DNA of 32,000 nt, from assembly GCA_002794465.1 (NCBI GenBank), contig MTSL01000150.1, positions 119,448-151,447 of the forward strand, written 5' to 3'. The notes beneath the pieces were generated by a model. It was not told the DNA's origin. It saw nothing but the letters and a program-made list of their open reading frames with translations, and searched no databases. Origin of the DNA: Paramicrosporidium saccamoebae KSL3 (Eukaryota; Fungi; Cryptomycota). Of the stretch, positions 1,511 to 30,401 are shown one piece after another (within the stretch, counting starts at the first letter, position 1; the number at the start of each line of letters is the position of its first letter). Position numbers and translations under genes: made by a program.

Positions 1511-1752
1511 TGTCGCGTAGTAGGGGATAAATAGTATGGACTGTCAGCGGGAAAGGGGGGTCTGTTTATTGCTAATCCTAGAATGGTATGAATACACATC
1601 TCACTATCCCCAAATGTTCAGCAAAGCGATCCATTCTAGCACACAAATACCCAATTAATCAACCCTCTATGTCACATGGCCAACTAATCAATCCCTTGCC
1701 TCTACGTCACGTAGCCAACTAATCAATCCTCTGCCTCTGCCTCTACGTCACA
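1511..1752 (-). mobile_element. Solo-LTR-like dispersed element, copy A (rearranged)
   Basis: Plus strand begins TGTCGCGTAGTAGGGGATAA and ends TCTACGTCACA, matching the termini of copies B and C. AATAAA lies on the minus strand at 1565-1570. Flanks are cata/tata. Confidence 0.7.
1651..1752. repeat. Three imperfect tandem units (29-38 bp) of an element terminus
   Basis: Units start at 1651, 1680 and 1715; each reads CCAAYTAATCAA...CTAYGTCAC. Confidence 0.85.
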
Positions 1753-1834
1753 TATACATGGACCAGGAATATAGTCTCTCTCACAGGCCATTATTTACAT
1801 TGTATTCATCTCTTTGAGTCAATATTTACAAAGT

Positions 1835-2716
1835 CTACGCGGCGAAAAAGGCGGGCCTTAGCAGGGATCGGACCTGTTCCAGCAACACGAGAGTTAACAC
1901 GGTATGCGGGCCGATCCGCACAAAATGCGGCACCAATCCTCTCCATAATGCCCCTACTCCTTCGACCCTCACCGTCTTTACGGCACAATTCACCAGTCCC
2001 GAATAAAGTTCCCCTTTTTGGTTGTAGAGTCGCGTCATTACCACATCAAAAGGATTCATAATCAGACAGGCGACTACGCCACTGCACATTGCTGCACCCA
2101 ACTGGACGGACATGCCGTCGATAAAGCCGAGAGTGAGAAGACGCGTCTTGAATCCGTCATAGGAGGCGAGTTGGGCAGCACTGCCGGCTGTAGTGCGCAA
2201 AACGGAGGCTGAGATACCGCGATAAAACCCCCGTACTCCCTCGTGGATGTAAATAGAGCGGATGGCAGGGAATATGCCCGTATAGCCGTGCTGATAGCCG
2301 GTTTGAAAGTGCGGCGAGTAGGACTGAAGTCGTGTTTTGATTAGGTTAAAGGGCGTCCCGATCATGGCAGCCACTCCCCCCGCTCCGGCACCGGCCATTG
2401 CATTGCAAAGTAGTGCATTGTTTGAGAGTGTCCGTTGAAAGAGCAGCCGGGTTGGCTCATATACCATGAAACGAGTACCATTCATTAGGATCTGATAAAT
2501 GTAGGCGGGGAGCAGGCCACGCTGCAATCCCGCAAGTCCCTCTAGTTGCCAGACCCGTGTCAGGCTAATCCGGCCCCCACCACCCATGCCCAACTCATTG
2601 TTCAGCTGCCGGCGGGTCTTTAGCATATCAAAGGGATTGGTGACAGTTACAGCACCGCATGCCGCAATCGATCCCGAGACAAACTGCAATCCCATCAGAG
2701 CGACATTGTCACTCAT
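1835..2716 (-). CDS. OAC1: Mitochondrial oxaloacetate/sulfate carrier (SLC25 family), 293 aa
   Basis: Three carrier signature repeats (TNPFDMLKTR, GTPFNLIKTR, MNPFDVVMTR) and GLQRGLLPAYIYQ resemble yeast Oac1. The likely ATG is 2716 (MSDNVAL), not 2863. Confidence 0.9.
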   Translation of the reverse strand: MSDNVALMGLQFVSGSIAACGAVTVTNPFDMLKTRRQLNNELGMGGGGRISLTRVWQLEGLAGLQRGLLPAYIYQILMNGTRFMVYEPTRLLFQRTLSNNALLCNAMAGAGAGGVAAMIGTPFNLIKTRLQSYSPHFQTGYQHGYTGIFPAIRSIYIHEGVRGFYRGISASVLRTTAGSAAQLASYDGFKTRLLTLGFIDGMSVQLGAAMCSGVVACLIMNPFDVVMTRLYNQKGELYSGLVNCAVKTVRVEGVGALWRGLVPHFVRIGPHTVLTLVLLEQVRSLLRPAFFAA

Positions 2717-2748
2717 GTGACGGACGTAACGAAAATTGTTTATTGTTA

Positions 2749-3324
2749 ATGGATGCGCTGATTGGGGAGCGGGACAAGATTGAGGATGAAATTGCCCGTC
2801 TGGAGGAGAAACTGCTGCAGGTGGGAGGAAGGGGGTGGTTGATGGTGTAGAGGAGGGACGCATCCGGGTTTCGGGATGACATGGACATGGTAGAGTCGCT
2901 GAAGCGGATCCTGGTGGCGCTGCGAAACGAACATTGTCTCATTATGGAGACTTTGGACCATGCCATTTCGGCAATCGACGCTCCCGAGCGGGTTGGACGA
3001 CGACAGAGCTTTCCTCCGGTGCACGGTCCGTTGGAGTCTTTGGTCAAGAAGGTGCAGGTGGCCGTGTCCTCGGAGAACACGGACTCGATTCTGGTTGGAC
3101 ACATTGTACCATGTCTTGGCCGTTTATTAATGCTGTAGACGCCAGAGAAGAATTATGGTCCGGCAGACATGTCCATGTCGACATACAAATATCTATGTAA
3201 ATATAATCTGCTCCACGAGTCATCGCCACGATCACCGCTCGCACCAATGCGTACTCAGCGTGCTCTCCCTCCCCCATACAAGATCCTTGATGACGAACTA
3301 ATAAAGCGGATGCCCAAGTTGTAA
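2749..3324 (+). CDS. Small coiled-coil protein, 170 aa, with Nas2/PSMD9-like N-terminus; exons 2749-2820, 2851-3105, 3139-3324
   Basis: GT-AG introns 2821-2850 (30 nt) and 3106-3138 (33 nt) join three frames with no stop. The N-terminus (DALIGERDKIEDEI...DASGFRDDMD...LRNEHCLIM) resembles the Nas2_N domain as I recall it. Confidence 0.6.
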
Positions 3325-3462
3325 TGCAATTGCATGATTTCTATATTTGGCAGAATGGGGGATGCTGGCTGAAAGAGGAAAGAGTTGAGCAGTCGATTAG
3401 ATACAGAGTAATAATCCACCCCCGCCGAGGGCAAGAGTGATCCATCCACCCTAGCGGAGAGG

Positions 3463-4625
3463 ATGACGTTTCTCAAAAAGGTTTTTGGTCACAGCGACCG
3501 ACGGACCAAGGAGACCAACGACTCGTCCAGCTCATTGACAAGTGGCTCGCAGCCGCGGGGTCCGTCCAGCACCACATCAAGTCCATTGCCCGAGAAGCTC
3601 TTTACTACGGCCGTGGACGCAGTGGTTGCGACACCTCGTCCACAATTCCGCTTTGAAGACTTTGAGGTGACCCGTACATTGGGCACAGGGTCCTTTGGAC
3701 GCGTCTGTCTGGCCCTACACCGTCCCACTCAGCAATTCTATGCAATGAAAAAGTTACGCAAGTCGGATGTATTGCGACTGAAGCAGGTGGAACATACCAA
3801 TAACGAACGTTTCTTGCTGTCACAAGTGGAGCATCCGTTTATTGTCAAAATGGTGTGCACCTTCCAGGACGAACGGCATCTGTACATTATTTTGGAGTAT
3901 GTGTGTGGAGGTGAATTGTTCAGTTTGCTGCGGAAAGTGCGGGTAGGACAATGGGTGGTTGGTCATGTTTGTAGACACTGCCGCCGTTTGTAGCGCAATT
4001 CTATGCAGCAGAAGTGGTGTTGGCCATCCAATATCTGCATGAACGCAACATTGTGTACCGCGATCTGAAGCCGGAGAATATCCTAATGACTCGTGAGGGT
4101 CACGTCCGATTGACAGACTTTGGCTTTGCCAAAATTGTGCCCGAGACGACATGGACATTGTGTGGCACGCCAGACTATCTGGCGCCAGAGATTGTCATGT
4201 CGCGTGGCTATGGAAAGGCGGTGGATTGGTACGCAGTAGGGGTGCTGATCTACGAAATGCTCATTGGCGCTCCGCCATTCTACCACGAGAATCAGATGAA
4301 ACTGTATGAGAACATTGTGCAGCAGGCAGCAAGGTTCCCTGCCGGCTTTGATCCAGTGGCCCGGAGTCTGATTGAGGGACTGTTGGAGAAGAATCCAGGA
4401 AAGCGGTTGGGAGTCCTAGTGGGCGGGGCAGAAGAAATTAAGCGTCATCCATGGTTCCGTGATGTCAAATGGGAATTGCTGTATCAGCTACGGATCAAGG
4501 CCCCGTATCGTCCCAAGGTGGCCCATGACGGTGACACGAGCAATTTCGACGAATATCCGGCTGAAATAGCTGAAACTGATCCGGTTGACTCGAAAATGTT
4601 TGAGGGTTTGTTTACCGGTTTTTAA
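3463..4625 (+). CDS. pka1: cAMP-dependent protein kinase catalytic subunit, 376 aa; exons 3463-3942, 3975-4625
   Basis: Motifs GTGSFG, YAMK, YRDLKPEN, DFG, TLCGTPDYLAPE and a C-terminal FTGF (FxxF). A 32-nt intron at 3943-3974 restores LRKVR|TLPPFVAQFYAAEV. Confidence 0.95.
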
Positions 4626-4831
4626 TTGTACGATTTAATAAACGGGCATTTGTAGTGTGATGAGTAGTGAGGTGAATAGGGAAGTGAGTAGTAAGGTGAG
4701 TAGTGAGGTGGGTGGGAAAGTGAGTCGGGAAATGAGTAGAGAGGCGAGTAGGGAAATGAGTAGAGAGGTGAGTAGGGAAGTAGGGAAGTGAGTAGGGAGA
4801 CTAAAAGCAAGAGTAAGAGCGAGACTAACAT
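4622..4831 (-). CDS. Possible 69-aa peptide with hydrophobic N-terminus and YSP/YSF repeats
   Basis: ATG at 4831 gives MLVSLLLLLLVSLLTSLLPYSPLYSFPYSP...; the stop overlaps the PKA stop in TTAA (4622-4625). It may be an artefact of the underlying 12-bp repeat. Confidence 0.25.
   Translation of the reverse strand: MLVSLLLLLLVSLLTSLLPYSPLYSFPYSPLYSFPDSLSHPPHYSPYYSLPYSPHYSSHYKCPFIKSYN
4652..4800. repeat. Degenerate purine-rich tandem repeat, ~12-bp period (GTGAGTAGGGAA-like)
   Basis: gtgagtag/atgagtag recurs with gggaa, tgag or agag spacers. Confidence 0.8.
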
Positions 4832-4843
4832 TGGAAGCAAGTA

Positions 4844-4888
4844 AAATGTCTAATCGTTAAATGTCTAGTCGTTAAATGTTCAGTCGTG
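4844..4888. repeat. Three 15-bp tandem units
   Basis: aaatgtctaatcgtt / aaatgtctagtcgtt / aaatgttcagtcgtg. Confidence 0.8.
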
Positions 4889-5030
4889 AAAGGCTCAGTA
4901 ATGTGTTCAGTCGCGACATTTTTTGTCATGAAACAAGAGTTACGGGGTACTCGTAATCACGAAATAGCTCAAGTGTGTGACCATGGCATGGTAGGTCGCT
5001 CCTCAATCATACGCACCCATAATTATGGCG

Positions 5031-5807
5031 TTATGGGGAAAAGGAGGGAATGTACACTGTCATTACATTAGGTTGATCGGGTAAAGAAACTGAGATAATC
5101 AGCGTCTGATCAGGAATGATGGAACATAGTAATGTCGCACCGGGTAGATAGCCCAGCACTCCCAACGTGCGACCCAACAGTTTGATTGGCACAGAGATGG
5201 AAATAAGTCGTTGTCGATCGTCCAATCCTCCCTGTACCACCCGCACACCCGAATAACGCAATCGACAGGTCAAAAGCGCCGTCTCCACACTTGTCACTAC
5301 GGTTCCTGCGGCATTTGCGGCCACCTCCACTGTGCCTTCCAGACTAACCACACGTCGAATCCCAAGCGGCAAATGAAAGGTAATGTGGGGACGGGCCACT
5401 GTAGGCTCACTGACAGACTCAGTGGGGGTTATGGACAATTCATGCAACACTGAACCAGGAATTCCCACCCTCTCCCCACCAACAATCTGCAGGGTACGGG
5501 ACAAAACTGTCATAGTTCCACTCGACTGGGTCTCCACTGCCCGCAACACGGACAACAAGGCAGCAGTTTCCACTTCAAAACAAATATCGCCAATAACCAT
5601 GCTGATACCCAGTTGAATTCCGGTGAAACTTGTCCAAGAGGTCAGTTGCAGGGAGGCTGCGGTGGGTCGTTGCAGCATCCGCACTGAATTTGAGCTAAAC
5701 GCCATACACACAGTGCGACCTGTGCGCTCCAGACACTGCATCACCCGACGCAGTTGATGGGTCGACGGGTCGAATCGTATCAATGCCTCCTCATGCGGGG
5801 CGAGCAT
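5031..5807 (-). CDS. HUS1: 9-1-1 checkpoint clamp subunit, Hus1-like, 258 aa
   Basis: VLHELSITP...EPTVARPHITFHLP, VAANAAGTVVTSVETALL and the terminal TVYIPSF align by eye with Hus1 (VTHDIPI..EPVVPDPDVSIYLP, EANLDGELNLKIETELV, QYFIPAL). Likely ATG is 5807. Confidence 0.75.
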   Translation of the reverse strand: MLAPHEEALIRFDPSTHQLRRVMQCLERTGRTVCMAFSSNSVRMLQRPTAASLQLTSWTSFTGIQLGISMVIGDICFEVETAALLSVLRAVETQSSGTMTVLSRTLQIVGGERVGIPGSVLHELSITPTESVSEPTVARPHITFHLPLGIRRVVSLEGTVEVAANAAGTVVTSVETALLTCRLRYSGVRVVQGGLDDRQRLISISVPIKLLGRTLGVLGYLPGATLLCSIIPDQTLIISVSLPDQPNVMTVYIPSFSP

Positions 5808-5819
5808 TGTGACCGGGGC

Positions 5820-6113
5820 ATGGAGGGGATTCTGCTCTTTGGTCGGTCGACCAACCGCACTGTGGATGCTGTGGATGTAGAGACGCCCTCTACCCCTTCT
5901 CGCATGAAGATAAAAGAAAAACAACAGAAACTGGGAAAGAGACTAAGCAGGATATTGGCAGTGTCAGGAGAGACTATACTGAAAGAGGCAAAAATGTTCC
6001 TATCGCCCACTCCTGCTGATCTTGTAATCAAACCAGTCAAAAGGCGACGGGGGCACAAGACTAGATCCCAGCGTCGCACCCGAAAAGAGCGACAAAGCTG
6101 TGTTCGTAGATAA
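5820..6113 (+). CDS. Hypothetical small basic protein, up to 97 aa
   Basis: K/R-rich ORF divergent from HUS1; the ATG could be 5820 or a downstream in-frame ATG. No family recognised. Confidence 0.3.
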   Translation: MEGILLFGRSTNRTVDAVDVETPSTPSRMKIKEKQQKLGKRLSRILAVSGETILKEAKMFLSPTPADLVIKPVKRRRGHKTRSQRRTRKERQSCVRR

Positions 6114-6595
6114 AAGACCAGAAAGGTCTTGATCCGTGCAAAGCTTGTATTAGTGCAAGGTTTGTAATAGCGTAAAGTTTGTAAAGACCCATTATCTGTT
6201 TAATAGATGGCATCATATTCTATGATTAGTGTGTGATAGTTTCCTACATATCATGCCTAATGTTAATGTGATGATTTCTCACATAACACACCTAACATAT
6301 TAATAGGATGGTTTTTCACATCTTACCTAGCATTCCTCTCACCTCTCCCCCTATTTACATACATCTAACACCTCCCCCCACACTAGCCCCCCGCCCAACA
6401 TACATCTCACATCTTTATTATATAAACGACAGCAAATCCGGACGGAGAGTCATAAAACGAAACAATCCAAACGTTCAATAGAAATATGCATACACGGGGG
6501 GACACGACCCAAACTGCCGCTACCGGATCGGATCGGACTGTCGTCGAAAACCTCGAAGCGGTGCACCTTCTGTTCTGCGTGTTCAAGTCACTAAA

Positions 6596-8087
6596 TCAAA
6601 AGGTACCTGGGGGAATGTCAACAATCAGTGAATCTACCACCGACGGGGTGGAGCTGCGAGAGGAGGCGGGATCAGAAAGGACGGGCAACGGCGCAGAAAG
6701 CGAAATGGCAGGTCGTAATCGAGCGGAGGGACATTCCAGGCCAAGATGATGACGGAGGTTCAGGGCTCCCAGGACCAGAACTAAACCCACAGCCGTGGCC
6801 CCCAAAGCCGCAAAGAACAGACCACAGGAGCCATAAGAGGCGTCGGTAGAGATGATGGGAGCAACTGCCAGTGGGATCAAAGTGACGGCTAAATTACAGG
6901 CTGAGGTGAGAATGCCATAGGCGGTGGAATGACGCGCATGTCGCACAACCGCAGGCACACAGGCCCAGAAACACAGCAACGTGGAATATGCAAAGCCCAG
7001 GACACTCAATGCCAAAAAAGCCACCACCTTTTGCGATCCCATCCCCAACATGGCATGACCTACTGCAAACGCCACGGCCCCACACATAATCAGACTGATG
7101 CGTTTCCCATGTCTGTCCACATATATTCCCAACAATGGCACCAGCACCATGGCCAACGTGTCGGGAATGGACATGGCCAAATTGGCATCCACCAAGTTGC
7201 CTCCAAAGTAGCGCGTCTGCAGATAATCCGACGCCACATTGTTATAAGGAATCATGCAGCCCTACCAATGAAACACCAAGAGGCAAATGTACATAGAAGA
7301 GGAAACAAATGGTGGCAAGAACCCAGAATCCATGATCAAAGTCGGAATTGGCAGCACGTCGACGAGAGGAGGACTGTTTGTGGATGTGCTCATGGTCGGA
7401 ATGAAAGTGATGATAGCAACGATCCACAACAATGGTGGCCACAGTACAGCACAGACTAAGAAGACAGCTGAAAAACCCCACCCAAAAGGCAGCAGGCACG
7501 GACCAATGCTCTGCCACTATTGGCGACAAGATGTTGTTGACTACGGTGCCTACTCGAGCAATGCTCAGATTCAATCCAATGGCCAAGGCCAACTCCTTTC
7601 CAGCAAACCACTGCGTCACCAGTCGGGACTGCGCTACCGCCAGCGATTCGCCGCCCACACCAAACAGCATACGTCCACCCACCATCAATCCAAAGTTGCC
7701 CGACTGCAATCCACATGCCACCAGGAATTGGCCCGCCGCCACCAGAAACGACAACAGCAACAGAATGGCGCGACTCCCCAGGCGGTCCAGCAGACGTCCC
7801 ACAAAGAAGGGCAACACCACATTGGGCACCGAGTAGAGGGAGTAGAGCAGACTGAGTCGGTCTTGAAAAAGCACCTCGTCTCCCGGCGGCGCCAATAGTC
7901 CCCGCAATGGTCGATTCAACGCGGATGGATTGTCAAACGCATAATAATTGCCAAACATGATCCAGCATGACAGGAACAGCACCACCCAGCGAATCCGACT
8001 ATGGTATTCCGGATGGGGAGTGGGCGGCTTGGAGTCGGTTGACCAGACGGGCGTCGCCTCGCCCGTTTCGAGCCAGTCGGGGGGCAT
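6596..8087 (-). CDS. MFS transporter, MFSD1-like, 486 aa; exons 8087-7293, 7261-6596
   Basis: Motifs GNYYAFDNPSAL, GRLLDRLG and GRMLFGVGGESL, with multiple TM helices. A 31-nt intron at 7262-7292 joins FLFY|GCMIPYNN. Confidence 0.9.
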
Positions 8088-8223
8088 AATTAGGGGGGAC
8101 GCGATGGATGACGGTGGATGGTGGTGTGCGTGGTGGAGTTGTAAGCACGACTCGAACGTACGTGCAAACTTTGCCTCGACCAGGGCATATTGAATTCGGA
8201 CAAATAAATAACCCGCCTTTGCA

Positions 8224-9660
8224 TTAATGGTCCTTTCCATAGGGAGTGGACCTATGCACCACATTGGCGCTGCGCATTGCATCAAAGGGGGGTGGGTTGG
8301 ATTGCAATACGCGCAAAATCTGCAATCTTCCCGTCAAGGAACCTCGTTGTACCGCTCGTTGCAGAGCTGTTGTCCCCAACACGGGCATTCGTGATGGCAT
8401 AACAACTGGTCCCCCTACCATCACTCTCGGACGTAGACTCAACGAATCCACTGAACGGAATTCATCGGGATCTAAGAGACGGACACGGTCATCGGCAGGG
8501 TCGTCTCGGAAATGGTCGGTGCTACTCCGAAGGGCCTTGTATACTGTTGGTCGACGTAGAATCTGGTCTGCTGTCCCACTCAGTCCCTCCACCGTCTCCT
8601 TCGACATGCTCAATTGCATTGTTCCCGAGTTAATGACGAGCGTCTGGGTCCCAAACCGTCCCGACTGGAATAAAATCGGATCTCTTAATCCCTCCAATCG
8701 ATCTGTTGTCGGCGGCGGTTCCATCCAGTGTTCCAACCACTCTTTAACATCTTCCCCCACCAAAGGTAGTTTGGCTGCCATACCTGAAAGATCTTCGAGA
8801 AGTGTACTGCTACGTCGACGGAGATCTACAATCTCAGGTCCGGCCAGCGGATCGCAGATGGAGTGTTTGCTGACCGTCCGATGAATGACACTGTTCCGAC
8901 GAAAGTAATAAACCTCGTCATAAGTATTGTTCACACTCGTATTGCTTGCATTAGCAATTCCATCCACTGTGGGAGAGGAGGCCCGAGAGGGAGTTGCTGA
9001 TACATCCCGACTAGGGGGCTCAGATGTCCGCCGGTTCCGAAAGTAACCTGAGGGTACGGCGGTCCGCAATGGAGTTGGAATATGTTCAGCCAGATTCTTG
9101 ATGGCTTCTATGGACATTTGATGGACAGTCAGGGGTAAGTCTTCACGGAAAAAATCTGCGAGTCGCTGTTCAATCTCCAGTTGGAGATGGTTTCGAATAG
9201 ATGGCACCGAATCAAAGGTCGAGTTTACCTGGACACTCTCCAATGGAGCATTTTTAAAGGACACTGTCACTCCCCGTGCCAAAGACACTATTAAAACAAA
9301 GATTCCTCGCAGTTTCATCTTGCTAATCTGCAATTCGAGGGGCACAATGAGCGGAGCATCCGCCACCCCCGAATTCGACCCACTGTTTAGCGGGTTTGCC
9401 TGCACCTTTGTCTGCAACACTACTCGCGCATCCCCTCCATAGGTGAGCTTGAAAATGCCCCGAAACCGGTCCTCCGACAATTCCCCAATTTCCAAAATCT
9501 CCAGTTCCGGCGGCTGTGTTCCCAGGTGCAATGAACGCACCCGAATGACGTCACAAATGTTTGACGGCTTGCTGCCACGGTTCAAGGCCGTCTCCAGCTC
9601 TCCCCGTGCACGCTCCACCACCACGGGGTCAAAGTCGGGCCAGTTGAAGCAAAACGCCAT
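8224..9660 (-). CDS. MDM34: ERMES complex subunit Mdm34 (SMP domain), 478 aa
   Basis: The N-terminus MAFCFNW...LGTQPPELEILEIGELSEDRFRGIFKLTYGGDA...QANPL is the fungal Mdm34 signature. Confidence 0.92.
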   Translation of the reverse strand: MAFCFNWPDFDPVVVERARGELETALNRGSKPSNICDVIRVRSLHLGTQPPELEILEIGELSEDRFRGIFKLTYGGDARVVLQTKVQANPLNSGSNSGVADAPLIVPLELQISKMKLRGIFVLIVSLARGVTVSFKNAPLESVQVNSTFDSVPSIRNHLQLEIEQRLADFFREDLPLTVHQMSIEAIKNLAEHIPTPLRTAVPSGYFRNRRTSEPPSRDVSATPSRASSPTVDGIANASNTSVNNTYDEVYYFRRNSVIHRTVSKHSICDPLAGPEIVDLRRRSSTLLEDLSGMAAKLPLVGEDVKEWLEHWMEPPPTTDRLEGLRDPILFQSGRFGTQTLVINSGTMQLSMSKETVEGLSGTADQILRRPTVYKALRSSTDHFRDDPADDRVRLLDPDEFRSVDSLSLRPRVMVGGPVVMPSRMPVLGTTALQRAVQRGSLTGRLQILRVLQSNPPPFDAMRSANVVHRSTPYGKDH

Positions 9661-10388: not shown

Positions 10389-10493
10389 ATAAAAATCTTC
10401 CCTCTCCATGCTCTGAGATTTGTACTAGAGACCACTCCTGGTCCGTAGATCGTATAGCATATATTATAGACTAGACATTTTCTTTCGTGCATA

Positions 10494-10700
10494 TATCGCG
10501 TAGTGGGTATAATACCACGGCCCAGTTTAGGTGAGAAGAGAATTTATTCAGTCAATCCAACGACCCATTTATAGTCTCACAAATAACATAATCCTCAAAT
10601 GGTAAAGATCTCATTATTCTTGATCGATTGTTCTGGTTATCCCTTCTCCAAACTAGGAAACCATTCTCAAGTACCCAACTAATCAGTCTTCTACGTCACA
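10494..10700 (-). mobile_element. Solo-LTR-like dispersed element, copy B (207 bp)
   Basis: Shares exact 23-, 20- and 18-nt blocks (10678-10700, 10637-10656, 10588-10605) with copy C in reverse complement. On the minus strand TATAAAT lies at 10567-10573 and AATAAA at 10543-10548. Confidence 0.8.
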
Positions 10701-10799
10701 CATATGTGCTCTTGCAGAGACCACACTCTCTTACTACGCCTATCACCCACACGGACGACTCATTACCCTCTCGTATGTGCGCTAACTTTTCAGATAATA

Positions 10800-11774
10800 C
10801 TAGGATTGCGGTTTATTATCCGATTTTCCCACAGATCGGACCAGTGACCAGAGAGTCTGTTCGTGGGCAGGGATTAAAGGTGCCAAGATGGCATTATCCG
10901 TATGGGTTACTCCACCAATTGTGATGCTGATAAAGGCCACTGCCCCAACAGCCGGATCAATTTCTTGCAAATCCTGAAAACCAAACGGATGTGCCACCCG
11001 AACCCAATTGACTTTGAGTCCGACAGCTGCTAGGGTGGCCCTACCCTGTTCCACCAATACGTCGGCCCGAAACATGTCTCCCAGATAGGCGGAAATCATG
11101 GTACGCAAGGCACGATATACTGCGGCCACGATGTCTCGTTGTGAAATGCTGAGACGGAGGAGTCGGGCATCAAAGGCAGCACCATCATCAGCCCGCACGG
11201 TTGGGATGGAAATGACGTCAATTGGATATTGTAAATCATCAATCATGCGTTGTAATACCCGGGTACGTACAAGGTCTTTCTGACCCAGATAGACTCGGGT
11301 GGGTGTGACCAGGTTTAGTAGTTTTGCCAACATGGTGCATTCGCCTTCCAAAATGTCCGTATTGACATAGTCAAAGGGCACAATGTCCGACTGCAGATAG
11401 ACGCGCGCCCCGTGCTGGGAGCCGTGTTTGAACAACTCCTGCACGGGGGGCAACAGCACTACATCCACCAACCCACACTCTTGCAGTCGCTCAAGATCCT
11501 CAGCGGGATGTCGGGGGAACATTTGGTACTCCTCCAACGTGGCAAATTGGCCCTCGTTGGTGGCGAGACTGACGACAACAACGTCACATTGTTGACGCGC
11601 CAAGGTCACTACACATGAGGGAAAGGGACTGAGAGTACAAAGAGAGTAATGGCCCTCATGAATATTGCCTTTGGTGGACACCAAACCAATGATTGTCCCT
11701 ACCCGACAATGCTCCAAACGCCATTTTCGGTATTCGCCGCTGTGATGGAACACTAACAGGCTCTTCGGCGCCAT
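10800..11774 (-). CDS. panC: Pantoate--beta-alanine ligase (pantothenate synthetase)-like, with probable in-frame 30-nt intron 11609-11638
   Basis: Motifs GLVSTKGNIHEGHYSL (HIGH-like), VVVVSLATNEGQF, FPRHPAEDL and YLGQKD. Removing gtactc...gtgtag deletes a 10-aa insertion and restores HYSLLTLARQQCD. Confidence 0.85.
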   Translation of the reverse strand: MAPKSLLVFHHSGEYRKWRLEHCRVGTIIGLVSTKGNIHEGHYSLCTLSPFPSCVVTLARQQCDVVVVSLATNEGQFATLEEYQMFPRHPAEDLERLQECGLVDVVLLPPVQELFKHGSQHGARVYLQSDIVPFDYVNTDILEGECTMLAKLLNLVTPTRVYLGQKDLVRTRVLQRMIDDLQYPIDVISIPTVRADDGAAFDARLLRLSISQRDIVAAVYRALRTMISAYLGDMFRADVLVEQGRATLAAVGLKVNWVRVAHPFGFQDLQEIDPAVGAVAFISITIGGVTHTDNAILAPLIPAHEQTLWSLVRSVGKSDNKPQS

Positions 11775-14536: not shown

Positions 14537-15472
14537 TTATTGTGGAGGATATGCATAGTATTGTTGTTGAGGGTTCGTAGAACCAGTAGAGCCCATCGGA
14601 TTCATCGAACCCATACCACTCATACTACCCATACCACTCATACTACCCACAACACTCATACTACCAACACCACTCATACTACCCATAGTATTTCCATAAT
14701 ACATGGCGGCGGGAACATTGGATGGATACATCATCTGGGCTTGGAGATGTAGGGGGGCTTGTTGTGCTTGTTGTTGCATCTGTAGCTGCATCTGTAATGC
14801 AAACTGACTGGGTGCCAGTGGCACTACTCCACTCTCGGCCAGCGCCTTTCTCGTCTGTGTGGCCAACAGTCGTTCTGCTGCCGAGCCGTGTCGTTCTCCA
14901 CGTCCATCCTTCTTGAACGCATAATTTACTGTCACAGGTCGATTGCACAGATATTGGCCGTTCATGGAGGAGATTGCCGAATCGGCTGCCTCAAACGAGT
15001 CATAGGATACAAACCCAAACCCCCTACTTACACCCGTCGCCTCGTCTCGGGCCACCTTGGGCGTCTGTATCAGTGTTCCAAACAGGATAAACGTCTCAAA
15101 TAATAGCTTTTCGTCAGCATCCGGCGCAAGGTTACCCACAAATAGGTTGGCTCCCACGTCCAAACTTCGCTTGTCAGTGCTCGACTTGTTGATTCGGATG
15201 GGCTTGGAGAAGAGACGCACACCGTTCATAACCTTTACCGCATACTCTGCGTCATCTTCCGTCTGGAATTCACAGAATCCATAGCCAAGGTGCTGTTGTG
15301 TAACGCGGTCACGGGGAATATGGACGTGCACCACCGGACCCGCCTGTACCATCATCTCCCACAGCAACGGCTCCGTCACCTTTTCGTCCAAATTTCCAAC
15401 ATAGATGGTGGCCTCTTGGTTACGAGTGGTCGCCTGAGGCTTACTCATCGTCATGGCACCCACGGTAGCCAT
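14537..15472 (-). CDS. SF3B4: Splicing factor 3B subunit 4 (Hsh49/SAP49), two RRMs
   Basis: [34 protein letters not shown] and [21 protein letters not shown]. Start is at 15472 (alternatives 15454, 15448). Confidence 0.95.
14594..14683. repeat. 18-bp coding tandem repeat (GSMSGM-like, five units) in the SF3B4 tail
   Basis: Translates [30 protein letters not shown]. Confidence 0.85.
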
Positions 15473-15653
15473 CTTTGCACTGGAAACGAAATTAATTATT
15501 TTACCTAAAAGAGCATTAATGTTATGGATTGTCTGGAACTGCAATGGTCCATTGTCCATGGATAATGTCATGAAATCGGTCAGTGATATCGGACTGTAAT
15601 GTTCTACTATTCTCCAGTAAATACCAAAACAACAAAATAGTTTTGTAAATTTA

Positions 15654-21612: not shown

Positions 21613-21659
21613 AAAGTATATTCGGCAATAATCCAGATGCGCAGCTCAGGGGCTGGACG

Positions 21660-23560
21660 ATGCAGCAGCAAGGTGGACTGGTGCCGTCCGGACGGGTCGT
21701 CTATGACGGCAAGCGGATGCGCAAAGCAATTACGCGGCGCACCATTGACCATTGCGCATCTATTATGCGCTATCTCGAAGACAGTGTGGGCGTCACGGGA
21801 CGAGGGGTTTTGCACAAGAGACTCTATGCCAGTTTGCAGGCTACACCCGACCACATAATAAATGTACGTCGTCTGTCTGTGTCGTAACTAAGATTAGTTA
21901 TTACCACCGCTGGCGTACCCGGAGAATCCAATTAATGCCGTGACCACAAAGTTTGTTCACTTGTCCCTCAACAAGCAACGGTGTCCCATTAATGCTGTTC
22001 GGGTAGGAGCATGTCCATTATTACTAATGTTTCTAGTGGACGCCAGATGGAAGGAGACTGCTGACGGGAACTTCTACGGGCGAATTCACCCTGTGGAATG
22101 GCATGACATTTAACTTTGAGACTATCCTGCAGGCGCATGACTCGGCAATCCGGGCAATGAGCTGGAGCCACAATGGCAACTTTCTCGCCACCGGCGATCA
22201 TGGCGGTGTCATAAAGATTTGGCAACCTTCCATGAACAATCTCAAAATCCTACCCGGACACAAGGAGCCCGTGCGGCAGGTGACCTTTTCCCCTAACGAT
22301 GCCAAATTTGCCTCTTGCTCTGATGACGGAACAGTAAAGATTTGGGATTTTGGCGAGATGCTTGAGGAACGCACACTGACGGGCCACGGATGGGATGTAA
22401 AGACGATCCATTGGCATCCATTCAAGGCCTTGCTCGCCTCGGGCAGCAAGGACAATCTCGTAAAATTATGGGACCCCAAAAGCGGAAGTAATATTGCCAC
22501 CGTGCACGGCCACAAGAACACAATTTTGGATGTCAAATGGAACAGAAATGGAAATTGGCTACTCACCTCCAGCAAGGACCAAATTGTCAAACTCTTTGAT
22601 ATCCGAACGCTGAAGGAGATTCAGACTTATAGAGCGCACAAGAAGGAAGTCAACGCGGTGGCTTGGCATCCAGTACATGAAACGCTCTTTGCCAGTGGCG
22701 GTGCGGAGGGAGCAATTTACTTTCATCTCGATAACCAAGAGGAGCCGGTTGGGGCCTTGGAGGGAGCACATGATGGAATTGTGTGGACTCTGGATTGGCA
22801 TCCGCTTGGACATGTCCTCACATCCGGTTCAGCGGACTGTTCGGCTCGTTTCTGGAGCAGACATCGGCCAGGAGACACTGTGCAAGACAAATTTACTCTT
22901 GGAAAGCAGGCTGCAGAGGCGTTGGGCATTATGGAGCCGACCATCAACCAACAACAGGAGGAGGATGATGAAGCACTCCCTGGACTGGGTTCAGATCGAC
23001 GACCAGGTCCACCGCGTCCACCGTCCTCAGGTGGGAGTCGAGCCATGCCGCATCCCACATGGCGGCCCCCTCCCAATATGAGACCGTTTTCGGTTCCATC
23101 GGGAATGCCACCCATGCCGCCCGGAATGCCGCCCATGCCTCCGGGAATGATGCGTCCTCCTCCAGGCATGTTTCCCGGAATGCGGCCAGGCTATGATAGG
23201 GACATGTCTCGTCGCCATCCCTCTAATGCCGATTCCAGATACAGTCAGCATGACTCGCATAATCCGCCGCCGCATAACCCACCACCGCATGATTCTCGCC
23301 ATCAATCGCATGATTCCAGATATCCGTCCCATGACCCAAGATATCCTCCGCCGCATGATTCAAGATATCCTCCGTCGCACGATTCGAGATATCCCCCGCC
23401 ACCTGATCCAAGATATCCTCCACCACACGACCCAAGATATCCCCCTCCCCATGACTCAAGGCATCCACCGCCTCCGCACGATCCAAGATATCCTCCACCG
23501 CCCCCACCAGACCATCGGTATTCACAACATCCGCCTAGTCATCATCGGCGGAGACACTAA
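21660..23560 (+). CDS. WDR33: Pre-mRNA 3'-end processing factor WDR33/Pfs2, 610 aa; exons 21660-21863, 21898-22002, 22037-23560
   Basis: Motifs [36 protein letters not shown] and [12 protein letters not shown]. Both introns are 34 nt. Confidence 0.95.
23231..23530. repeat. Coding tandem repeat, ~11 units of D(S/P)R(Y/H)PPPH (~24 bp)
   Basis: Seen in the WDR33 C-terminus; codons vary synonymously between units. Confidence 0.9.
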
Positions 23561-23643
23561 GTCCTTAGTACATAATCACTCTTTTATAGAGACTCTTTGT
23601 AAAATGTACAATGTCCAAATATGGCATTTAGAAATGTTTGGGT

Positions 23644-24106
23644 ATGGAGGACGTTAGTCTTGAGAATGATGCTGCTGGTCGCACCAGAAATGTTACGGGC
23701 ACGCTTCGTCAACAAAATGATAGGGAAGTGCGATCCGTTCGGTTTGGTAGGCTGTAGGGCCGCTTGTAATCCTGTAGGTCCGCGAGAAGACGCACTGCTC
23801 TCCATTGCCATGCTCTGTGTCTCCATTCTCCTTACCCACCTTCCCATCTATCTAATGGCACCGTCTGCCTGGCGCGTTTACATCTCCTCCAACCAGTACC
23901 TGGTGGGTGGGCTGCTCTACATGTGGTTAACAGGCTACATGATCATCTCCTTTGTCATTTACCACCAATTCGAACGAACCGAACGATATCCCGCCGATGA
24001 TTACTACATAATGTCTGAGGGAAGCGGTGCAGCCATGCCCGAGCTGTTGGTGTTACCGGATGGACGGCTCGCCGTAGGCGCATGTATAGGTACTATCAAG
24101 ACGTAA
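23644..24106 (+). CDS. Hypothetical two-TM membrane protein, ~143 aa; exons 23644-23746, 23778-24106; may extend further 3'
   Basis: ATG 23644 (MEDVSLEN) plus a 31-nt GT-AG intron at 23747-23777 joins the hydrophobic frame (LLSIAMLCVSILL; LVGGLLYMWLTGYMIISFVIY). Confidence 0.55.
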
Positions 24107-24130
24107 CACAATACAGTCATCATTGGTCCA

Positions 24131-24350
24131 TTTGCGGCATATCGTGAGAGATCCCATTATGTGTGGTGTGCAAGCAGGGCTGTTTATTCAACGAGAGTAC
24201 TGCCTACGTGTCGGCTGTAGGTAACAGTTAATGATTGGTAAAAGGGCTGCAGGACTGTCAATCACCCACATTACGGATATTGCAAAATGTGCATATATCC
24301 TTGGGTTGTTTGCGGCATATCGCAAGAGATCTCATTGTGTGCAGTGTAGA
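24131..24350. repeat. 42-bp imperfect direct repeat (24131-24172 and 24309-24350)
   Basis: 34 of 42 positions are identical; copies are 178 bp apart. Confidence 0.8.
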
Positions 24351-24359
24351 CATAATTGT

Positions 24360-25502
24360 TTATTTGCGGTAATACGTTGCGAGAAAGGCTGCCTTTTCAC
24401 GCAAAGAGAGACTTACACTGCGGACATGTAATAGGAGCGACATTATGTCAGAAGTTTTAGAGTTGAATGTTTCATCCTCAGGAGTCGGCACATGTCCGTT
24501 GCTGTAGATGGAGGTGGAGCAGATCCATTTAACATTCATCACATTATACCACTGTCGGCAATGAGTTGCAAAAAATTTTAGCATATCAATGCTGCCAGTG
24601 AGCGCCAAGGTGGGCATGAAGGAGCCACTACTCATCAGATACTTCATCCCGACAATATGGATCCGTTGATTCTTTGGCAGATGCGACAAGTCGGCAGTGA
24701 ATGGGAGCAGCGCCCTTCCGTTGCTAGTGGTTCCCTACAAATTACGTGGTTACTTTCAGTGGGTACTTCAGGAAAGACCACTACCGGTCCATGGGCTGAT
24801 TCCACAAACTTGGAAAGCTCGGTGGCATGGCCGTGCTCCACAGCTCCGGGATTTACATGATTGAAGAATGCAAACCATCGAGAGCACGCCGTCACCTTTC
24901 CTGTCTCGGCATTGGTGGTGGTAAAGGTTGGCGAATATCTACGTCTGTCAACCAACAAACTACAAGTCTACTTCATGCAGAGGTAGATGATATCAACAGG
25001 CGATTGACTGTTGCAGATTACTATATCGCCCGAATGAACGTCCTCTTCGCCTGATGCACCCCGCTTCGCCAACGTTAATGACAACTCCTCACTGGGTCGG
25101 AATGTCATGCGTTTGCAGGGAATCGAAATGTAGCCCAGTGTGAACAGCACCAATCGTCCGAAAACGTTGTCTATGATTCGGAGAATTGAGAATCCCAACC
25201 TGGGAGCTACAAGCTGATAGTCAGAATGGAATTGTAGCTACCATGACCATTTGCACAAGTACTAGCGAGACGAGCCAGTTGGCAATCAGGGCAACGAGAA
25301 TTGGCAACCGGAAAGATGCCAGACCGAGTCCTACAATCTGGTAGACACCATCAACAATGGTTCGCTCTCGCGAGGCCTACACATAATTTATATGCTTATC
25401 CAGTATACAGTGACGGGAAGGAATGGATGTATTCCCGTAGAAGGGTCCTAAACATGAGCGTCCATAACGTGTTCATACCCGCCAAGTCGTAAACTTTTCC
25501 AT
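24360..25502 (-). CDS. LOA1: Lysophosphatidic acid acyltransferase Loa1/Vps66-like; five short introns
   Basis: The spliced N-terminus MEKFTTWR|DPSTGIHPFLP matches the yeast Loa1/Vps66 start. Also IVICNSQSPVD and PVVVFPE|GTTSNGR, the latter across a 32-nt intron. Confidence 0.88.
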
Positions 25503-25523
25503 AATCAATTTCCCGTAAACTGC

Positions 25524-27227
25524 ATGATACCGGAGCCTTTTGATGCGAGTCTGTTCCTTGAGCTGCTGTTTTCTGGAGGCACGCTAGAAGAGCAGCTCGC
25601 TAAATTAAAGGAGCTTAACAAGAAGGTATTTTAACGGACAGTGCTGATGGATAGGCTGTATTTATAGTTCCGGGTCGGGAGTCGAGCTGGATGGAGGATG
25701 CAGCCACATTGGCAGCTCATTTCAAGGACACTTGCTTCCTAGTCACATCAGTTGATGAGGAAAACGTGCAGAAGGTCGTCTCACTTGCTGGCCGACTCGG
25801 TCTTGTAAGCGAGTACGCAATGTTTGCATGTCGGAGATTGTAGGTCCAAGGTCGTGTTATGGGATGCTTGCACAGTGGATGATCCTGAGAAATTGGATCA
25901 GTTTCCCGAGCTCTCAAATGTGCCAAAGAATGAGTATCCTGTAGAGTCCACGTTTTCCATTGACACTGATAATCTCGACGCTCGAGTTGTTGTGCTTGAT
26001 GCAAGTCATTTACCGGGAGACAGTCACGTCAGACCAGCCTCGAGTGTGGATTCTTTCATGGTTTCCTCGTAACAGTACTCAGAAAGTGCTCATCGTTAGA
26101 CCTGACATTAGCCCCTGGCGTGATACATTGCTAGCTAAACTGCGTGATCCTGCCGCCGCTCCCATCGTCAAAGAAATCAAAAAGTACGGCTACGCAACCT
26201 TGCTATATCTCTAGACTGCTGAAATTCTTGGGACTGAACAACATTTCTACAGAGAATAAATCCAGGACAGTGCAGAGATTCTTTGAGGATATTCGCAGCA
26301 TGTTGGATGTCAATCCTGCTTGGATCGGTATTGAAAAGGACGAGCTGGACGGTTCAGTAGATGTGATGGAAAAGTATATTTTCAGCAAGTGCTTCAGTAT
26401 GGTCTATCAGCCGGCCGATTTGGACGATGCTGTGCAGGACCGTCTCTTTGTGGAAAAGATTGAGCATCTTAAGGGAGTCGTTTCCTTTTCTTCTCTGTGC
26501 TCTGAGGCCGTTGGGGAGCCCACTTTGGAAGCCTACAAGGACCCGATTGCGGCGTTGGAGCTGACGGGACAAGTCGAGTCTCCCTACGAAAAGCTCGATT
26601 GCTTGCTTTCGTTTGTGAAAGGAATCGCTTCAAGCAATAACGAGGCCAGCTCCGATCTGTTGATTCCCATCATTGTTTGGATCATAATAGAGCAGATTCC
26701 ACACAATCTCATTTCCAATGTCCGATATATCCAACGGTACAGGGACCATTCACGACTCTCTGGCGAAGCAGCATTCTGTCTCACAAATATTGTACTCGCA
26801 CAACGTCCACCAATGTGTTTAGATTGCTGCGATTACAACGATTGAAAAGTTGCATTCTGAGCAGGTCAGCTCGACCACTCCCATCTACAGTATGCTGGCG
26901 TCACAGGATGCCCTGTCCAAGGAACCAAAGCCACTGTCTGACGTGGCCAGCACGTTTATGAATACCATTGGCTTTGTTCCGCGGGCCATTGGCAGCGCAG
27001 TGGTTGACACGTTCCGCTCCAGGAGCAGCAGAGCCTCATCGGCCGCGGCATCTAAGGAAGTTTCCGCAGGAGCCTCGCCTGCCACAGAACCTGCCAATTT
27101 TGCGGCTTTACATCCTGAAATTAGACGATTGCGCGAAAAGGTTCTTGCCACTGACGATATTCGTAGTCTATCGCTGGGTGAAATCCAGCAGATCATTCAA
27201 GATTATCGCAACTTGCTACGCTCATAA
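25524..27227 (+). CDS. VPS9-domain Rab5-family GEF, 516 aa; exons 25524-25625, 25655-25812, 25844-26068, 26100-26183, 26215-26791, 26823-27227
   Basis: Helical bundle LAKLRDPAAAPIVKEIK, plus SPYEKLDCL, SSDLLIPIIVWII and LSGEAAFCLTNI|IAAI. Introns of 29, 31, 31, 31 and 31 nt all keep the frame. Confidence 0.88.
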
Positions 27228-27236
27228 AGCACTTTA

Positions 27237-28523
27237 TTATTGTCTCACGTGTTTTTTTGTTCGACTCAAATTTCTTCCCTGATTATGATCCATTTTGCGT
27301 GGTAATTCCATGGAGAATGGCATGAAGCTATTCCGATAGTTATCAGTTTCGGGGAGAATGTTTGGCATCGTAATCGGCACGCTCCTGAATCTTTTTCCCG
27401 GTTGTAATACTGTCCCTTTGTGATGAAGATCTTCTGGAACAGAAAGTCTATTCCAATCCACAGGTTCCTGTCTAAGAGGCAACATAGGGTCAACTTTCGT
27501 TTCAATGATTTTAGGGACATTGGACAGGTCTTCTTGGCGAGGAACTTTTCGAGAGCCGAAACTCGTTTTTTCATTCATAGAGCCATCAGACGATTTTGCT
27601 TTCTTGCGTGAAGATGATGAACCCGCGGATAGCCTTTCCCGGCTCCTCTTTTCCTCTTTGAAATTTGAAACTGACGATTCATACAAACCATTCGTACTGT
27701 ATCTGCCTGAATCCAAACGGATGTCTCCACCACGGGCTGCATCTTTAGCGTGTATGTTGCCGATTTCAAGCTGCCACATCCCTCTTATAAGAGCATCATG
27801 CAAAACATCAATCTCATCGGGCGACCCAATTGTCGTCGTCGTTGTTGTAGCAGTAGTAAAGGGCTTGTTGGGGGAGCGTTTGCTTAAATGCTCAGGAGCA
27901 GCACTCCGATAATGCGGCCCTGGAGATGTCACGAGCGACTCGGATGAGCTTGACGCTTTATTGGATCCAGCGTCCCATTTTTCTTCAAAAGACTTCCACC
28001 AGGAAGGCCCTGATGATGCTCTGCTCCGCGACTCTTCTTTCGTTCCGTTATCAGGATCCTTTGTCTCGCTAGCAGTCTTCTCTACTTTGTTCCCATTCCT
28101 TCTTGGTATGTCCTCAAACCAAAATACGTGCTCAGAGGAGCTCCCATGGTCAAAACTGTGTCCGCCAGAAGTCGAGTCCTTTAATTCCTCCCCACGTGCC
28201 TTGAGTGTTTTACGGATATTGCTTAATGAGTCTGCGTTATCATAAAAAGATCGCCCCTCGATATCCGAGATTTGTTCCCGGGTAATCATTCTTTTATAGA
28301 AGCTCAATGGTAGTTGTGTTAAATCGTTTTCGGTACACTCGCCGAATTGGATTCTGTCGAGAGTGACACCAGGAGGGAGAAGGTCTTGCATACTCGCAAT
28401 CGTGCTGATACGTTTTCCATTGGCAAAAAGAGCTACCTTACCCTGCAGCTGGTTAATGTATAGGATGCCATGGCATGGCACGAGGCATAGCGCCAGACCG
28501 AGCAGCAAGAAAAAATGATCCAT
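27237..28523 (-). CDS. Secreted orphan-family protein P1, 428 aa
   Basis: Intronless ORF with signal peptide-like MDHFFLLLGLALCLVPCHG, core RIQFGECTENDLTQLPLSFYK and a low-complexity S/T/K/E tail. Confidence 0.85.
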   Translation of the reverse strand: MDHFFLLLGLALCLVPCHGILYINQLQGKVALFANGKRISTIASMQDLLPPGVTLDRIQFGECTENDLTQLPLSFYKRMITREQISDIEGRSFYDNADSLSNIRKTLKARGEELKDSTSGGHSFDHGSSSEHVFWFEDIPRRNGNKVEKTASETKDPDNGTKEESRSRASSGPSWWKSFEEKWDAGSNKASSSSESLVTSPGPHYRSAAPEHLSKRSPNKPFTTATTTTTTIGSPDEIDVLHDALIRGMWQLEIGNIHAKDAARGGDIRLDSGRYSTNGLYESSVSNFKEEKRSRERLSAGSSSSRKKAKSSDGSMNEKTSFGSRKVPRQEDLSNVPKIIETKVDPMLPLRQEPVDWNRLSVPEDLHHKGTVLQPGKRFRSVPITMPNILPETDNYRNSFMPFSMELPRKMDHNQGRNLSRTKKHVRQ

Positions 28524-29127
28524 GACCCCCGGGGCTCATAAATTGCACACTTATTGACTCTGCAACCTGACATTGTGGCTACAGCTGGAAATGCCAGTTG
28601 TAGCTTTTATAATCAAATTAAAGCGTATATTTCTAGGGATGCTGGGTTTTAAAAGTCGAGTTGCGATTAGATCCATTTATCACATCGGCCGTCACTATCG
28701 CCGGATAGGCCAGACATGGTGGAGGTAGCAAGTTAGAAGCTTCAGCAGAGGCTCGTGGCTCTATTTCAGTAGTGAAATGTGCATTTAAGCCTATCCACTA
28801 CGACATATGCTTGCAGCATACTGCTCACTCTACCACACAACAGTTTCGCCTGTGGCAAAAGAAATACTCTACCTGAACAATTTTAGTTGGTCTTGGATTC
28901 GAGATTGGGTCTACGTTGAAATGCACTATCAGTGTCTGTCTTTTCACTTTTACGCCAATCAATTGATAAATCGCCTCGCCAAATATACATGATACTCTGT
29001 ATCAACGCAAATGGAGGACTATACTACGTCTTATCTAGTCACTTACCGTGTTTTATTCGCCGTGTGCTACCTCTTTGAATCAGTGACTGAACATCTATCT
29101 TTATGGAATTGACCAGACATTATCCGT

Positions 29128-29880
29128 CTACATTTCAAGCTCGAATTGCATATCTTCTCCTAAAGACGGACGCCTGCTTCCAAGCTTTCTGGGACTGTAA
29201 TGGGATGGTGCTGTGTGGGCAGTAGTGTACCTTCGATTCACATCTCCGACAGGATTGTAAGCTCCAAGGGAAGCGCTGGCTGAGCCGAAATTACCCCCAA
29301 CATTTACTTCGGGCCATAAAAAGGTCGTTGTTTGCTGGACAGGAGATGGAATATTTGTCGTTGACTCTTCTAAAGGCGACATGCGACGCTTGCTAACAGG
29401 ATTTGTATCCTTCCCCTGGAACCCATTATTCTCTCGATTCTGCTTAGTTTTATGTGGCACCAGGTGAGACTTTGGAAACTTGGCCCTTTTTTCTTGGCTG
29501 CCGTCCCGAACTGGGTGTTCAATTGGTCTTTTTGGAGCTTCTTTCAGGCCGCGATCGAGAAATTCCATCTCTACGAGTTCTCTCACGCCCGCAGCATTGG
29601 GGCTTTTCATTAGAAACATGCATTTCAATTGCTGAATCTGGCCATCGCTAGCGGATTTAAAAAAGTCTTTGGGCAGCCAAAGCAGTTCATTAACAGTGGC
29701 GAGTGCAAAGTCAATCTTGCCCAGGGCTAAACCAGGCGGCACAAAGTTTTGAAAGTCTTCGACGGTAGCCATGGCTTCGGTCAGGTCAAACATTCTTGTC
29801 TCCATACGCCCCAAATTATTCAGTACCTGGCCCATTAATAAAGCCGATGCTATCGAAAAGTAGCCAAAGACAGCAAGCAT
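29128..29880 (-). CDS. Secreted orphan-family protein P2, 250 aa from ATG 29880 (in-frame ATGs also at 29904 and 29922)
   Basis: Short hydrophobic N-terminus MLAVFGYFSIASALL, core KIDFALATVNELLWLPKDFFK and a low-complexity tail. Confidence 0.8.
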   Translation of the reverse strand: MLAVFGYFSIASALLMGQVLNNLGRMETRMFDLTEAMATVEDFQNFVPPGLALGKIDFALATVNELLWLPKDFFKSASDGQIQQLKCMFLMKSPNAAGVRELVEMEFLDRGLKEAPKRPIEHPVRDGSQEKRAKFPKSHLVPHKTKQNRENNGFQGKDTNPVSKRRMSPLEESTTNIPSPVQQTTTFLWPEVNVGGNFGSASASLGAYNPVGDVNRRYTTAHTAPSHYSPRKLGSRRPSLGEDMQFELEM

Positions 29881-30099
29881 TGTGCCTGCCTGAACTGTCA
29901 ACATTTTTGAGAACCCTGGCATGTGCTTCCCGGGCCCTTTGGATGATAGGTTGACAGCTTTCAAACTGCCCGACTCTCATTGGTCGGTAGCAAGTCAACG
30001 GTCGGCAAGATTGTAAAAGTGGATGGTTGATAAAAATATAAAAATGGACGGGTGGCCATAATATACAAGGTAGATGATCGGTTGATGATGATGAAAAAA

Positions 30100-30181
30100 G
30101 TGGGCGATTGATAATACAAAGCTTGGATGGTTGATAGTGGCAAAAAGAGTGTGCGATTGATAATGCAAAACTTGGACGGTT
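30100..30181. repeat. 33-bp direct repeat, 49-bp period
   Basis: gtgggcgattgataatacaaagcttggatggtt (30100-30132) versus gtgtgcgattgataatgcaaaacttggacggtt (30149-30181): 4 mismatches. Confidence 0.85.
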
Positions 30182-30401
30182 TGTGACGTAGAAGACTGAT
30201 TAGTATGTCTTTTGGAAATAGTTCTCTAGTTTGGAGAAGGGATAATCAGAACAATCGATGAAGGATAATGAGATCTATATCTTACCATTTGAGGATTATT
30301 ACTATGCAACTCGGGAGACTATAAAAGGGCTATTGGATTAAAAATGAGCGGGTTCTCTTCCCGCTTGAAAAAGTCCGTAGTATTATCCCCACTACGCGAC
30401 A
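30182..30401 (+). mobile_element. Solo-LTR-like dispersed element, copy C (220 bp) with 4-bp TSD GGTT
   Basis: Termini TGTGACGTAG...CTACGCGACA form an 8/10 inverted repeat. GGTT lies at 30178-30181 and 30402-30405, and TATAAAAG at 30320-30327. Confidence 0.85.

Follow-up and report, generated by a model that had tools for sequence, protein, structure and literature searches.

A dispersed family of short mobile elements with 4-bp target-site duplications in Paramicrosporidium saccamoebae: possible solo long terminal repeats

The genome of Paramicrosporidium saccamoebae, an intranuclear parasite of amoebae, harbours a dispersed family of short, non-coding mobile elements, three copies of which (A, B and C) lie in the stretch of 32,000 nucleotides of contig MTSL01000150.1 (assembly GCA_002794465.1) that was analysed here and is referred to as the window. 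The copies were inserted by an integrase-type (DDE) reaction with a 4-bp target stagger, and their ends are 5'-TGTGA...CGACA-3'. A fourth locus (D) was detected about 7 kb to the left of window position 1, when the 10-kb flanks of the window were scanned with a hidden Markov model (HMM) of the family; the sequence covered is thus 46.7 kb of contiguous DNA, about 0.6% of the 7.3-Mb genome, and the density of the family is four loci in this stretch. Record positions are obtained as 119447 + w, where w is the position in the window, and gene coordinates are those of the annotation of the contig record. According to its description, the genome deposited as MTSL00000000 has a size of 7.3 Mb, a GC content of 47% and 76% of gene space (PMC5701793). 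A first-pass annotation, made from the sequence of the window, had proposed a dispersed mobile-element family; defined ends, 4-bp duplications, a paralogous empty site for C and the absence of B in a relative bear this proposal out. The family is unreported, the literature search having turned up no account of transposons in P. saccamoebae, and the kind of element is an ordinary one.

Evidence of insertion is provided by copies C and B. In particular, C interrupts a host array of 49-nt tandem repeats: units 1 and 2, which are 80% identical, precede the element, and unit 3 begins at position 30178 with GGTT, is split by C and continues from position 30406. The junction between units 1 and 2, TTGGAT/GGTTGATAG, in which GGTT occurs once and nothing intervenes, represents a paralogous empty site. 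The junction between units 2 and 3 reads TTGGAC-GGTT-(C)-GGTT-GATAC, and the sequence past C still aligns to the array unit. Copy B was compared with the corresponding locus of a relative from Joint Genome Institute (JGI) metagenomes, which shares about 83% nucleotide identity in coding sequence. Specifically, the spacer between panC and zf-LYAR measures 189 nt in the relative versus 400 nt in the window, that is, a difference of 211 nt to be set beside the 207 nt of B, and no match to the element was found in the relative's spacer; as the divergence of this spacer prevents the empty site from being resolved to the base, the absence of B consists of the length difference together with the lack of an element match. 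Since C interrupts the 49-nt array with a single-GGTT empty junction and B is missing from the relative's spacer, the family has transposed. As regards the array itself, it lies on the 5' side of the gene at 28883-29904 (-), some 180-280 bp away from its start, and each of its units holds GATTGATAAT, which resembles the GATTGATTAG of the 5' repeat units of the element.

The ends of the elements are well defined. All copies have the form TGTGACGTAG...CTACGCGA(C/T)A, with the termini TGTG...ACA in A, C and D and, following one substitution, a final ...ATA in B. The two ends form a terminal inverted repeat (TGTGACGTAG / TGTCGCGTAG) that matches at 8 of 10 positions, and the similarity between them ceases after 10 nt, with 8-9 matches over the initial 14 positions; moreover, both fit the pattern TGTNR, as TGTGA and, read from the opposite end, as TGTCG. 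Within the window the terminal motifs are confined to A, B and C. For the 5' motif, 5 matches stand against an expectation of 0.87, and for the 3' motif 3 against one of 0.10; the observed number was reached by no shuffle. Homology stops exactly at the element ends, the flanks of the four loci being unrelated, so that the boundaries are sharp at TGTG...ACA. Among the lengths and positions scanned, the best register of the flanking duplication is 4 bp, with three perfect duplications (B, C and D) and one in which 3 of 4 positions agree (A); the chance rate of a 4/4 match at random sites of the window is 0.0046 per site. A 5-bp register was discarded in favour of 4 bp, as it fits only B and D by way of a coincidental A; larger element boundaries or a common nested target were likewise rejected, matches between flanks being of 9-10 nt only, which is the level of chance. 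The TG..CA ends and the short imperfect inverted repeat attributed to the family at first reading were both recovered, and the duplications, whose sequences were not given there, are of 4 bp at all four loci.

Of the 16 duplicated base pairs, 15 are identical, while the copies differ from one another by 12-25%; hence the insertions postdate the divergence of the source lineages, and several source copies would have been active in the not too distant past. The host DNA around the copies shows some recurring features of its own. On both sides of A (1757-1771 and 1482-1500) it carries a 15-nt inverted repeat, CCTGGTCCATGTATA / TATATATGGACCAGG, with 14 of 15 positions matching. The 8-mer GGACCAGG occurs four times in the window, three of them within 60 nt of A or B (also at 10437-10444), and GGATCAGG is found about 49 nt downstream of C. 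These features may be due to chance (flank BLAST E >= 0.1) or may represent a feature of preferred targets.

Table 1. Positions of the copies, their flanking duplications and the interrupted host array (window coordinates unless indicated otherwise).
Feature	Position	Strand	Remarks
Copy A, core	1511-1676	-	Subfamily I, without the TATAAA block; TGTGACATAG...CTACGCGACA; family HMM E = 2e-42; collinear BLASTN blocks with B and C
Copy A, two additional tandem 5' terminal units (35-42 nt)	1677-1710 and 1711-1752	-	Repeat search, 5' motif matches, nhmmer partial matches
Copy B	10494-10700	-	Subfamily II, with the 42-nt TATAAA block; TGTGACGTAG...CTACGCGATA; family HMM E = 8.5e-43
Copy C	30182-30401	+	Subfamily II; TGTGACGTAG...CTACGCGACA; family HMM E = 1.2e-46
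Locus D (complete copy D1 and partial copy D2)	Record MTSL01000150.1 112315-112568 = L018 19743-19996 (-)	window +	Family HMM scan of the flanks
A, upstream flank, TATA (element sense)	1753-1756	-	tata/TGTGACG...GCGACA/tatg, 3/4 match
A, downstream flank, TATG (element sense)	1507-1510	-	
B, upstream duplication, TATG	10701-10704	-	
B, downstream duplication, TATG	10490-10493	-	
C, upstream duplication, GGTT	30178-30181	+	
C, downstream duplication, GGTT	30402-30405	+	
First two units of the interrupted 49-nt host array	30080-30177	+	Repeat search, unit alignments

The copies differ in their internal organization, their length ranging from 166 to 254 bp. B and C can be aligned over their full length (BLASTN identity of 75.7% over 218 columns including gaps, E = 6e-40; 84% over aligned bases) and share exact blocks of 23, 20 and 18 nt, the same three lengths that had been noticed initially. 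The first-pass annotation had considered A, B and C homologous end to end: its coordinates and strands stand, and so does the homology of B and C, but that of A is limited to a core, which corresponds to B and C in three collinear blocks (33 nt on the 5' side, 37 nt in the middle and 46 nt on the 3' side), each about 81% identical by BLASTN. In the alignment, the 42-nt block with TATAAA of B and C is missing from A. The rest of A (1677-1752) is made of tandem units, each of which begins with (T)GTGACGTAGAGG and holds GATTGATTAGTTGG, with matches to the 5' motif at 1699-1711 and 1740-1752; the number of 5' units accordingly varies, from three in A to one or two in the other copies. Locus D consists of a complete copy, D1, and, directly following it, of the 3'-terminal 77 nt of a second copy, D2, joined as ...GGCA/TGTG... 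and enclosed together in a single GGTG/GGTG duplication. Two subfamilies can be recognized, one comprising A, D1 and D2 (subfamily I) and the other B and C (subfamily II), with identities of 81-88% within and 75-78% between them. As to the promoter and polyadenylation signals that had been read in the family, they are present at the copies for which they were described: TATAAA(A/T)G is restricted to B and C, A and B carry AATAAA, and C carries ATTAAA. In subfamily II, TATAAA is followed, about 20 nt on and in one orientation, by AATAAA or ATTAAA. At the place where A and B carry AATAAA, D has AATGAA and AGTGAA. Since the TATA block occurs only in B and C and AATAAA is unconserved, these signals do not define the family.

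All four loci are nearer to the 3' end of a gene than to any 5' end. A is oriented in sense to a mitochondrial-carrier gene (1835-2863, -) and begins 82 nt past its stop, within a convergent spacer of 856 bp, and B 99 nt past the stop of panC (10800-11774, -), again in sense and within a convergent spacer, of 411 bp. C lies in antisense in a spacer of 623 bp; the stop of a gene for a protein of 204 amino acids (30528-31142, -) is 126 nt away, and the next gene starts at a distance of 277 nt. D follows, in sense, the stop of a paralog open reading frame (ORF) at 50 nt. With four loci only, targeting and selection are inseparable as causes of this distribution. A occupies 28% of its spacer, B 50% and C 35%. 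Spacers of similar size (788, 598, 582 and 477 bp) occur in the window without any element, so that the suggestion that the copies explain much of three large intergenic gaps is overstated and holds only in part. With respect to D, it falls within the span of a gene model of 2569 amino acids. The ORF upstream of D (L018 20047-21003) has the C-terminal domain and the stop of its paralog at window 52-978 (41% identity, E = 1e-56), and for this reason the model is an apparent fusion of tandem paralogs, with D in the spacer between them. The idea that D is an introner, whose ends and duplication would give GT...AG, was ruled out, as D follows the natural stop of the tandem paralog and no reading frame is open on either side of it.

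Which kind of element the copies derive from is less firmly established. That they are solo long terminal repeats (LTRs) of a Ty3/gypsy-like LTR retrotransposon is plausible but unproven, and we give it an even chance. On this reading, a full Ty3/gypsy-like element would integrate first; its two LTRs would subsequently recombine and the internal gag-pol region would be lost, so that a single LTR would stay between the original duplications. The 5' units with TGACGTAG and GATTGATTAG, variable in number, could correspond to enhancer-type repeats of the U3 region, and TATAAA and AATAAA of subfamily II to the promoter and polyadenylation signals of the LTR. Moreover, copies surviving 50-126 nt from stop codons would occupy the least harmful sites of a genome that is 76% genic. 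In the classification of Wicker et al. 2007, TG..CA ends with a duplication of 4-6 bp are said to be the textbook definition of an LTR. TGTNR termini are in turn typical of the vast majority of Gypsy LTRs (PMC2836005). Locus D fits solo LTRs as well, as a 5' LTR joined to the remnant of a 3' LTR after an internal deletion. Among known systems, the solo LTRs of Ty3/gypsy elements (Metaviridae), for example yeast Ty3 sigma and the LTRs of the insect gypsy group, resemble the copies in their TG..CA/TGTNR ends, short imperfect inverted repeat and 4-bp duplication, in being non-coding, a few hundred bp long or less and dispersed in intergenic DNA, and in their orientation-specific TATA and poly(A)-like signals, which here are found in one subfamily.

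A number of observations weigh against solo LTRs. In the 46.7 kb there are no paired direct copies flanking gag/pol, no primer-binding site (PBS), no polypurine tract (PPT) and no reverse transcriptase or integrase gene, so that, unlike Ty3/gypsy elements, the family has no full-length partner demonstrated here; the interval between A and B is occupied by ordinary host genes. In size the elements fall near the lower limit for LTRs and are shorter than most fungal ones. Their promoter and poly(A) motifs, moreover, are not shared by the whole family, TATAAA being absent from subfamily I and AATAAA being replaced in D. Furthermore, the variation in 5' repeat number and the structure of D are equally explained by local tandem duplication, and the duplications in A and D take in the very termini, with which slippage in an element of any kind would also agree. 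Two of the four targets (G/TATA and A/TATG/C) resemble the RTATAY preference of Ginger2. Finally, the genome paper assigns 0.53% of the genome to repeats, chiefly simple and low-complexity ones, and leaves transposons unmentioned (PMC5701793). An association with tRNA genes, as in Ty3 sigma, is not seen here, the window being without tRNA genes. As to further traces of the family, none of the 108 short stop-to-stop ORFs of the unannotated spacers was recognizable by eye as a pol remnant. The 5' end motif was found at 12 loci in metagenomes, all of them chance matches by the score of the family HMM, and the 3' end motif at 5 loci in GTDB genomes and at none in IMG/VR, all due to chance, as only the pattern itself was matched.

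The alternative named by the first-pass annotation, a DNA transposon of the Ginger type, is the right one to weigh. The copies would in this case be miniature, non-autonomous DNA transposons with TGT..ACA ends, moved by an integrase-like DDE transposase of the Ginger2-like or a related superfamily, a possibility that we regard as open to considerable doubt. It is in line with the small, non-coding copies (166-254 bp), with their 8/10 terminal inverted repeat and with the 4-bp duplications, and the repeated 5' subterminal units of A could be binding repeats for a transposase. The comparison with Ginger1 and Ginger2/TDD (Bao, Kapitonov and Jurka 2010, PMC2836005) cuts both ways: these elements share the TGTNR termini and the 4-bp duplications, relatives of Ginger2 are present in fungi and protists, and the TAT(A/G) targets seen at two of four loci are near RTATAY, but the published inverted repeats of Ginger1 and Ginger2 measure 40-270 bp, which misfits the 10 bp found here. 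In the same way, among the only four targets available, GGTT (C) and GGTG (D) match neither RTATAY nor the CCGG/CCGT of Ginger1, which occurs at none of the loci. A tendency to form hairpins is absent, the folding z-scores of the copies ranging from -2.4 to +1.65 with no consistent stability, and no transposase was found within the 46.7 kb. Because the inverted repeat is of only 10 nt, the element is asymmetric and the folding stability is inconsistent, an LTR is favoured over a miniature inverted-repeat transposon.

It is improbable that the copies are derived from retroelements without being classical solo LTRs, that is, LTRs or fragments of a non-autonomous element akin to the terminal-repeat retrotransposons in miniature (TRIMs) and mobilised in trans, or LTR-LTR tandem products. 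The LTR-like repeats of TRIMs are very short (100-250 bp) and have TG..CA ends, and their duplications are short as well; a very small size, typical of TRIM LTRs, is found here together with LTR-like ends and the 4-bp duplication; the combination in D of a copy and a partial copy within one duplication would also be accommodated. A TRIM, however, is built as LTR-internal-LTR with PBS and PPT, whereas no internal domain with PBS or PPT lies between D1 and D2, which have nothing between them, and A, B and C are single units directly bounded by duplications. Hardly to be expected is, in addition, a host module that is not mobile (for instance, a cassette acting as 3' end or terminator, or a family of small structured RNA genes) and that was spread by segmental duplication or gene conversion. 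Such a module would agree with the distance of 50-126 nt between each of the four loci and a stop codon, with the orientation of three of them, which is that of the upstream gene, and with AATAAA in A and B; opposed to it are 4-bp flanking duplications that differ among loci, flanks that are not homologous, a tandem array interrupted by C, and the lack of any Rfam family, tRNA, covariation or consistent folding z-scores. A structured RNA family was in fact rejected on 0 matches in Rfam, inconsistent z-scores and an RNAalifold prediction of only a 6-bp hairpin at the 3' side, without compensatory changes. Equally rejected was a short interspersed nuclear element, as there is no tRNA-like sequence (ARAGORN), no Rfam match and no tail, and the ...CGACA ends are constant and the duplication is fixed at 4 bp.

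Other features of the window and its flanks are worth recording. Three tandem genes (27237-28523, 28883-29904 and 30528-31142, all -) have in common an N-terminal motif of about 45 amino acids, LxPG..L.RI.F...T..DL.QLP..F(F/Y)K, which follows hydrophobic, signal-peptide-like N-termini (pairwise E values of 6e-08 and 8e-07). They have no Pfam match, and a search for paralogs of the member of 428 amino acids among 5.8 billion proteins matched only the query itself; they constitute a lineage-specific tandem family, and C is situated between two of these genes. Six proteins from the window and flanks, joined into one query, gave no match in the protein search. In the 2.2-kb "spacer" at 2864-5030, in which no gene is annotated, two ORFs in different frames, 3463-3993 (+) and 4014-4625 (+), jointly encode a complete protein-kinase domain, corresponding to positions 1-98 (E = 1e-20) and 108-263 (E = 8e-44) of the Pfam Pkinase model. 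The pair is either a gene that the annotation lacks, with a short intron, frameshift or assembly error, or a pseudogene. Directly after it, at 4640-4783, there is a 12-nt tandem repeat of about 12 GTAGTGAGGTGA-like units, and the GC skew is strong (+0.29) in that kilobase. In-frame repeats are found in two genes: one of 24 nt at 23324-23491, encoding the PPPHD(S/P)RY tail of a WD40 protein of 575 amino acids (21660-23560, +), and one of 9 nt at 14593-14687, in the C-terminal tail of an RRM protein (14537-15559, -). Where the genes at 23621-24106 (+) and 24360-25108 (-) converge, the spacer contains a 51-nt direct repeat (24119-24169 and 24297-24347, 78% identity, 178 nt apart) that is unrelated to the element family. 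Outside the window, L017 777-2950 (window-equivalent 35574-37747) is a stretch of 2.2 kb without a called gene, in which an ORF of 243 amino acids (L017 1527-2258, +) resembles, by eye only, methylenetetrahydrofolate dehydrogenase/cyclohydrolase and suggests further missing gene models.

The presence of a transposed family with intact duplications shows that integrase-driven transposition has taken place in this reduced parasite genome after it separated from a close relative. From a practical point of view, the family can be used as an insertion-polymorphism marker and as a handle on the autonomous element, and it calls for caution with spacer-length statistics and gene models, as one copy lies within the 2569-residue model, apparently a fusion of tandem paralogs. 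The biology is not in itself of a new kind; it is of modest interest for genome reduction in Rozellomycota and Microsporidia and has practical value for annotation. It is rather unlikely that the family is still or was recently active with a preference for sites just 3' of stops, or that it represents the first family of Ginger2-type miniature transposons in the Rozellomycota/Microsporidia lineage. If targeting of gene 3' ends or terminators were true, as opposed to mere survival of copies at such sites, copies in sense would provide the host gene upstream of them with signals for polyadenylation or termination; if either active targeting or the Ginger2-type origin were true, this would amount to an ongoing interplay between transposon and host in a reduced genome thought to be nearly free of transposons.

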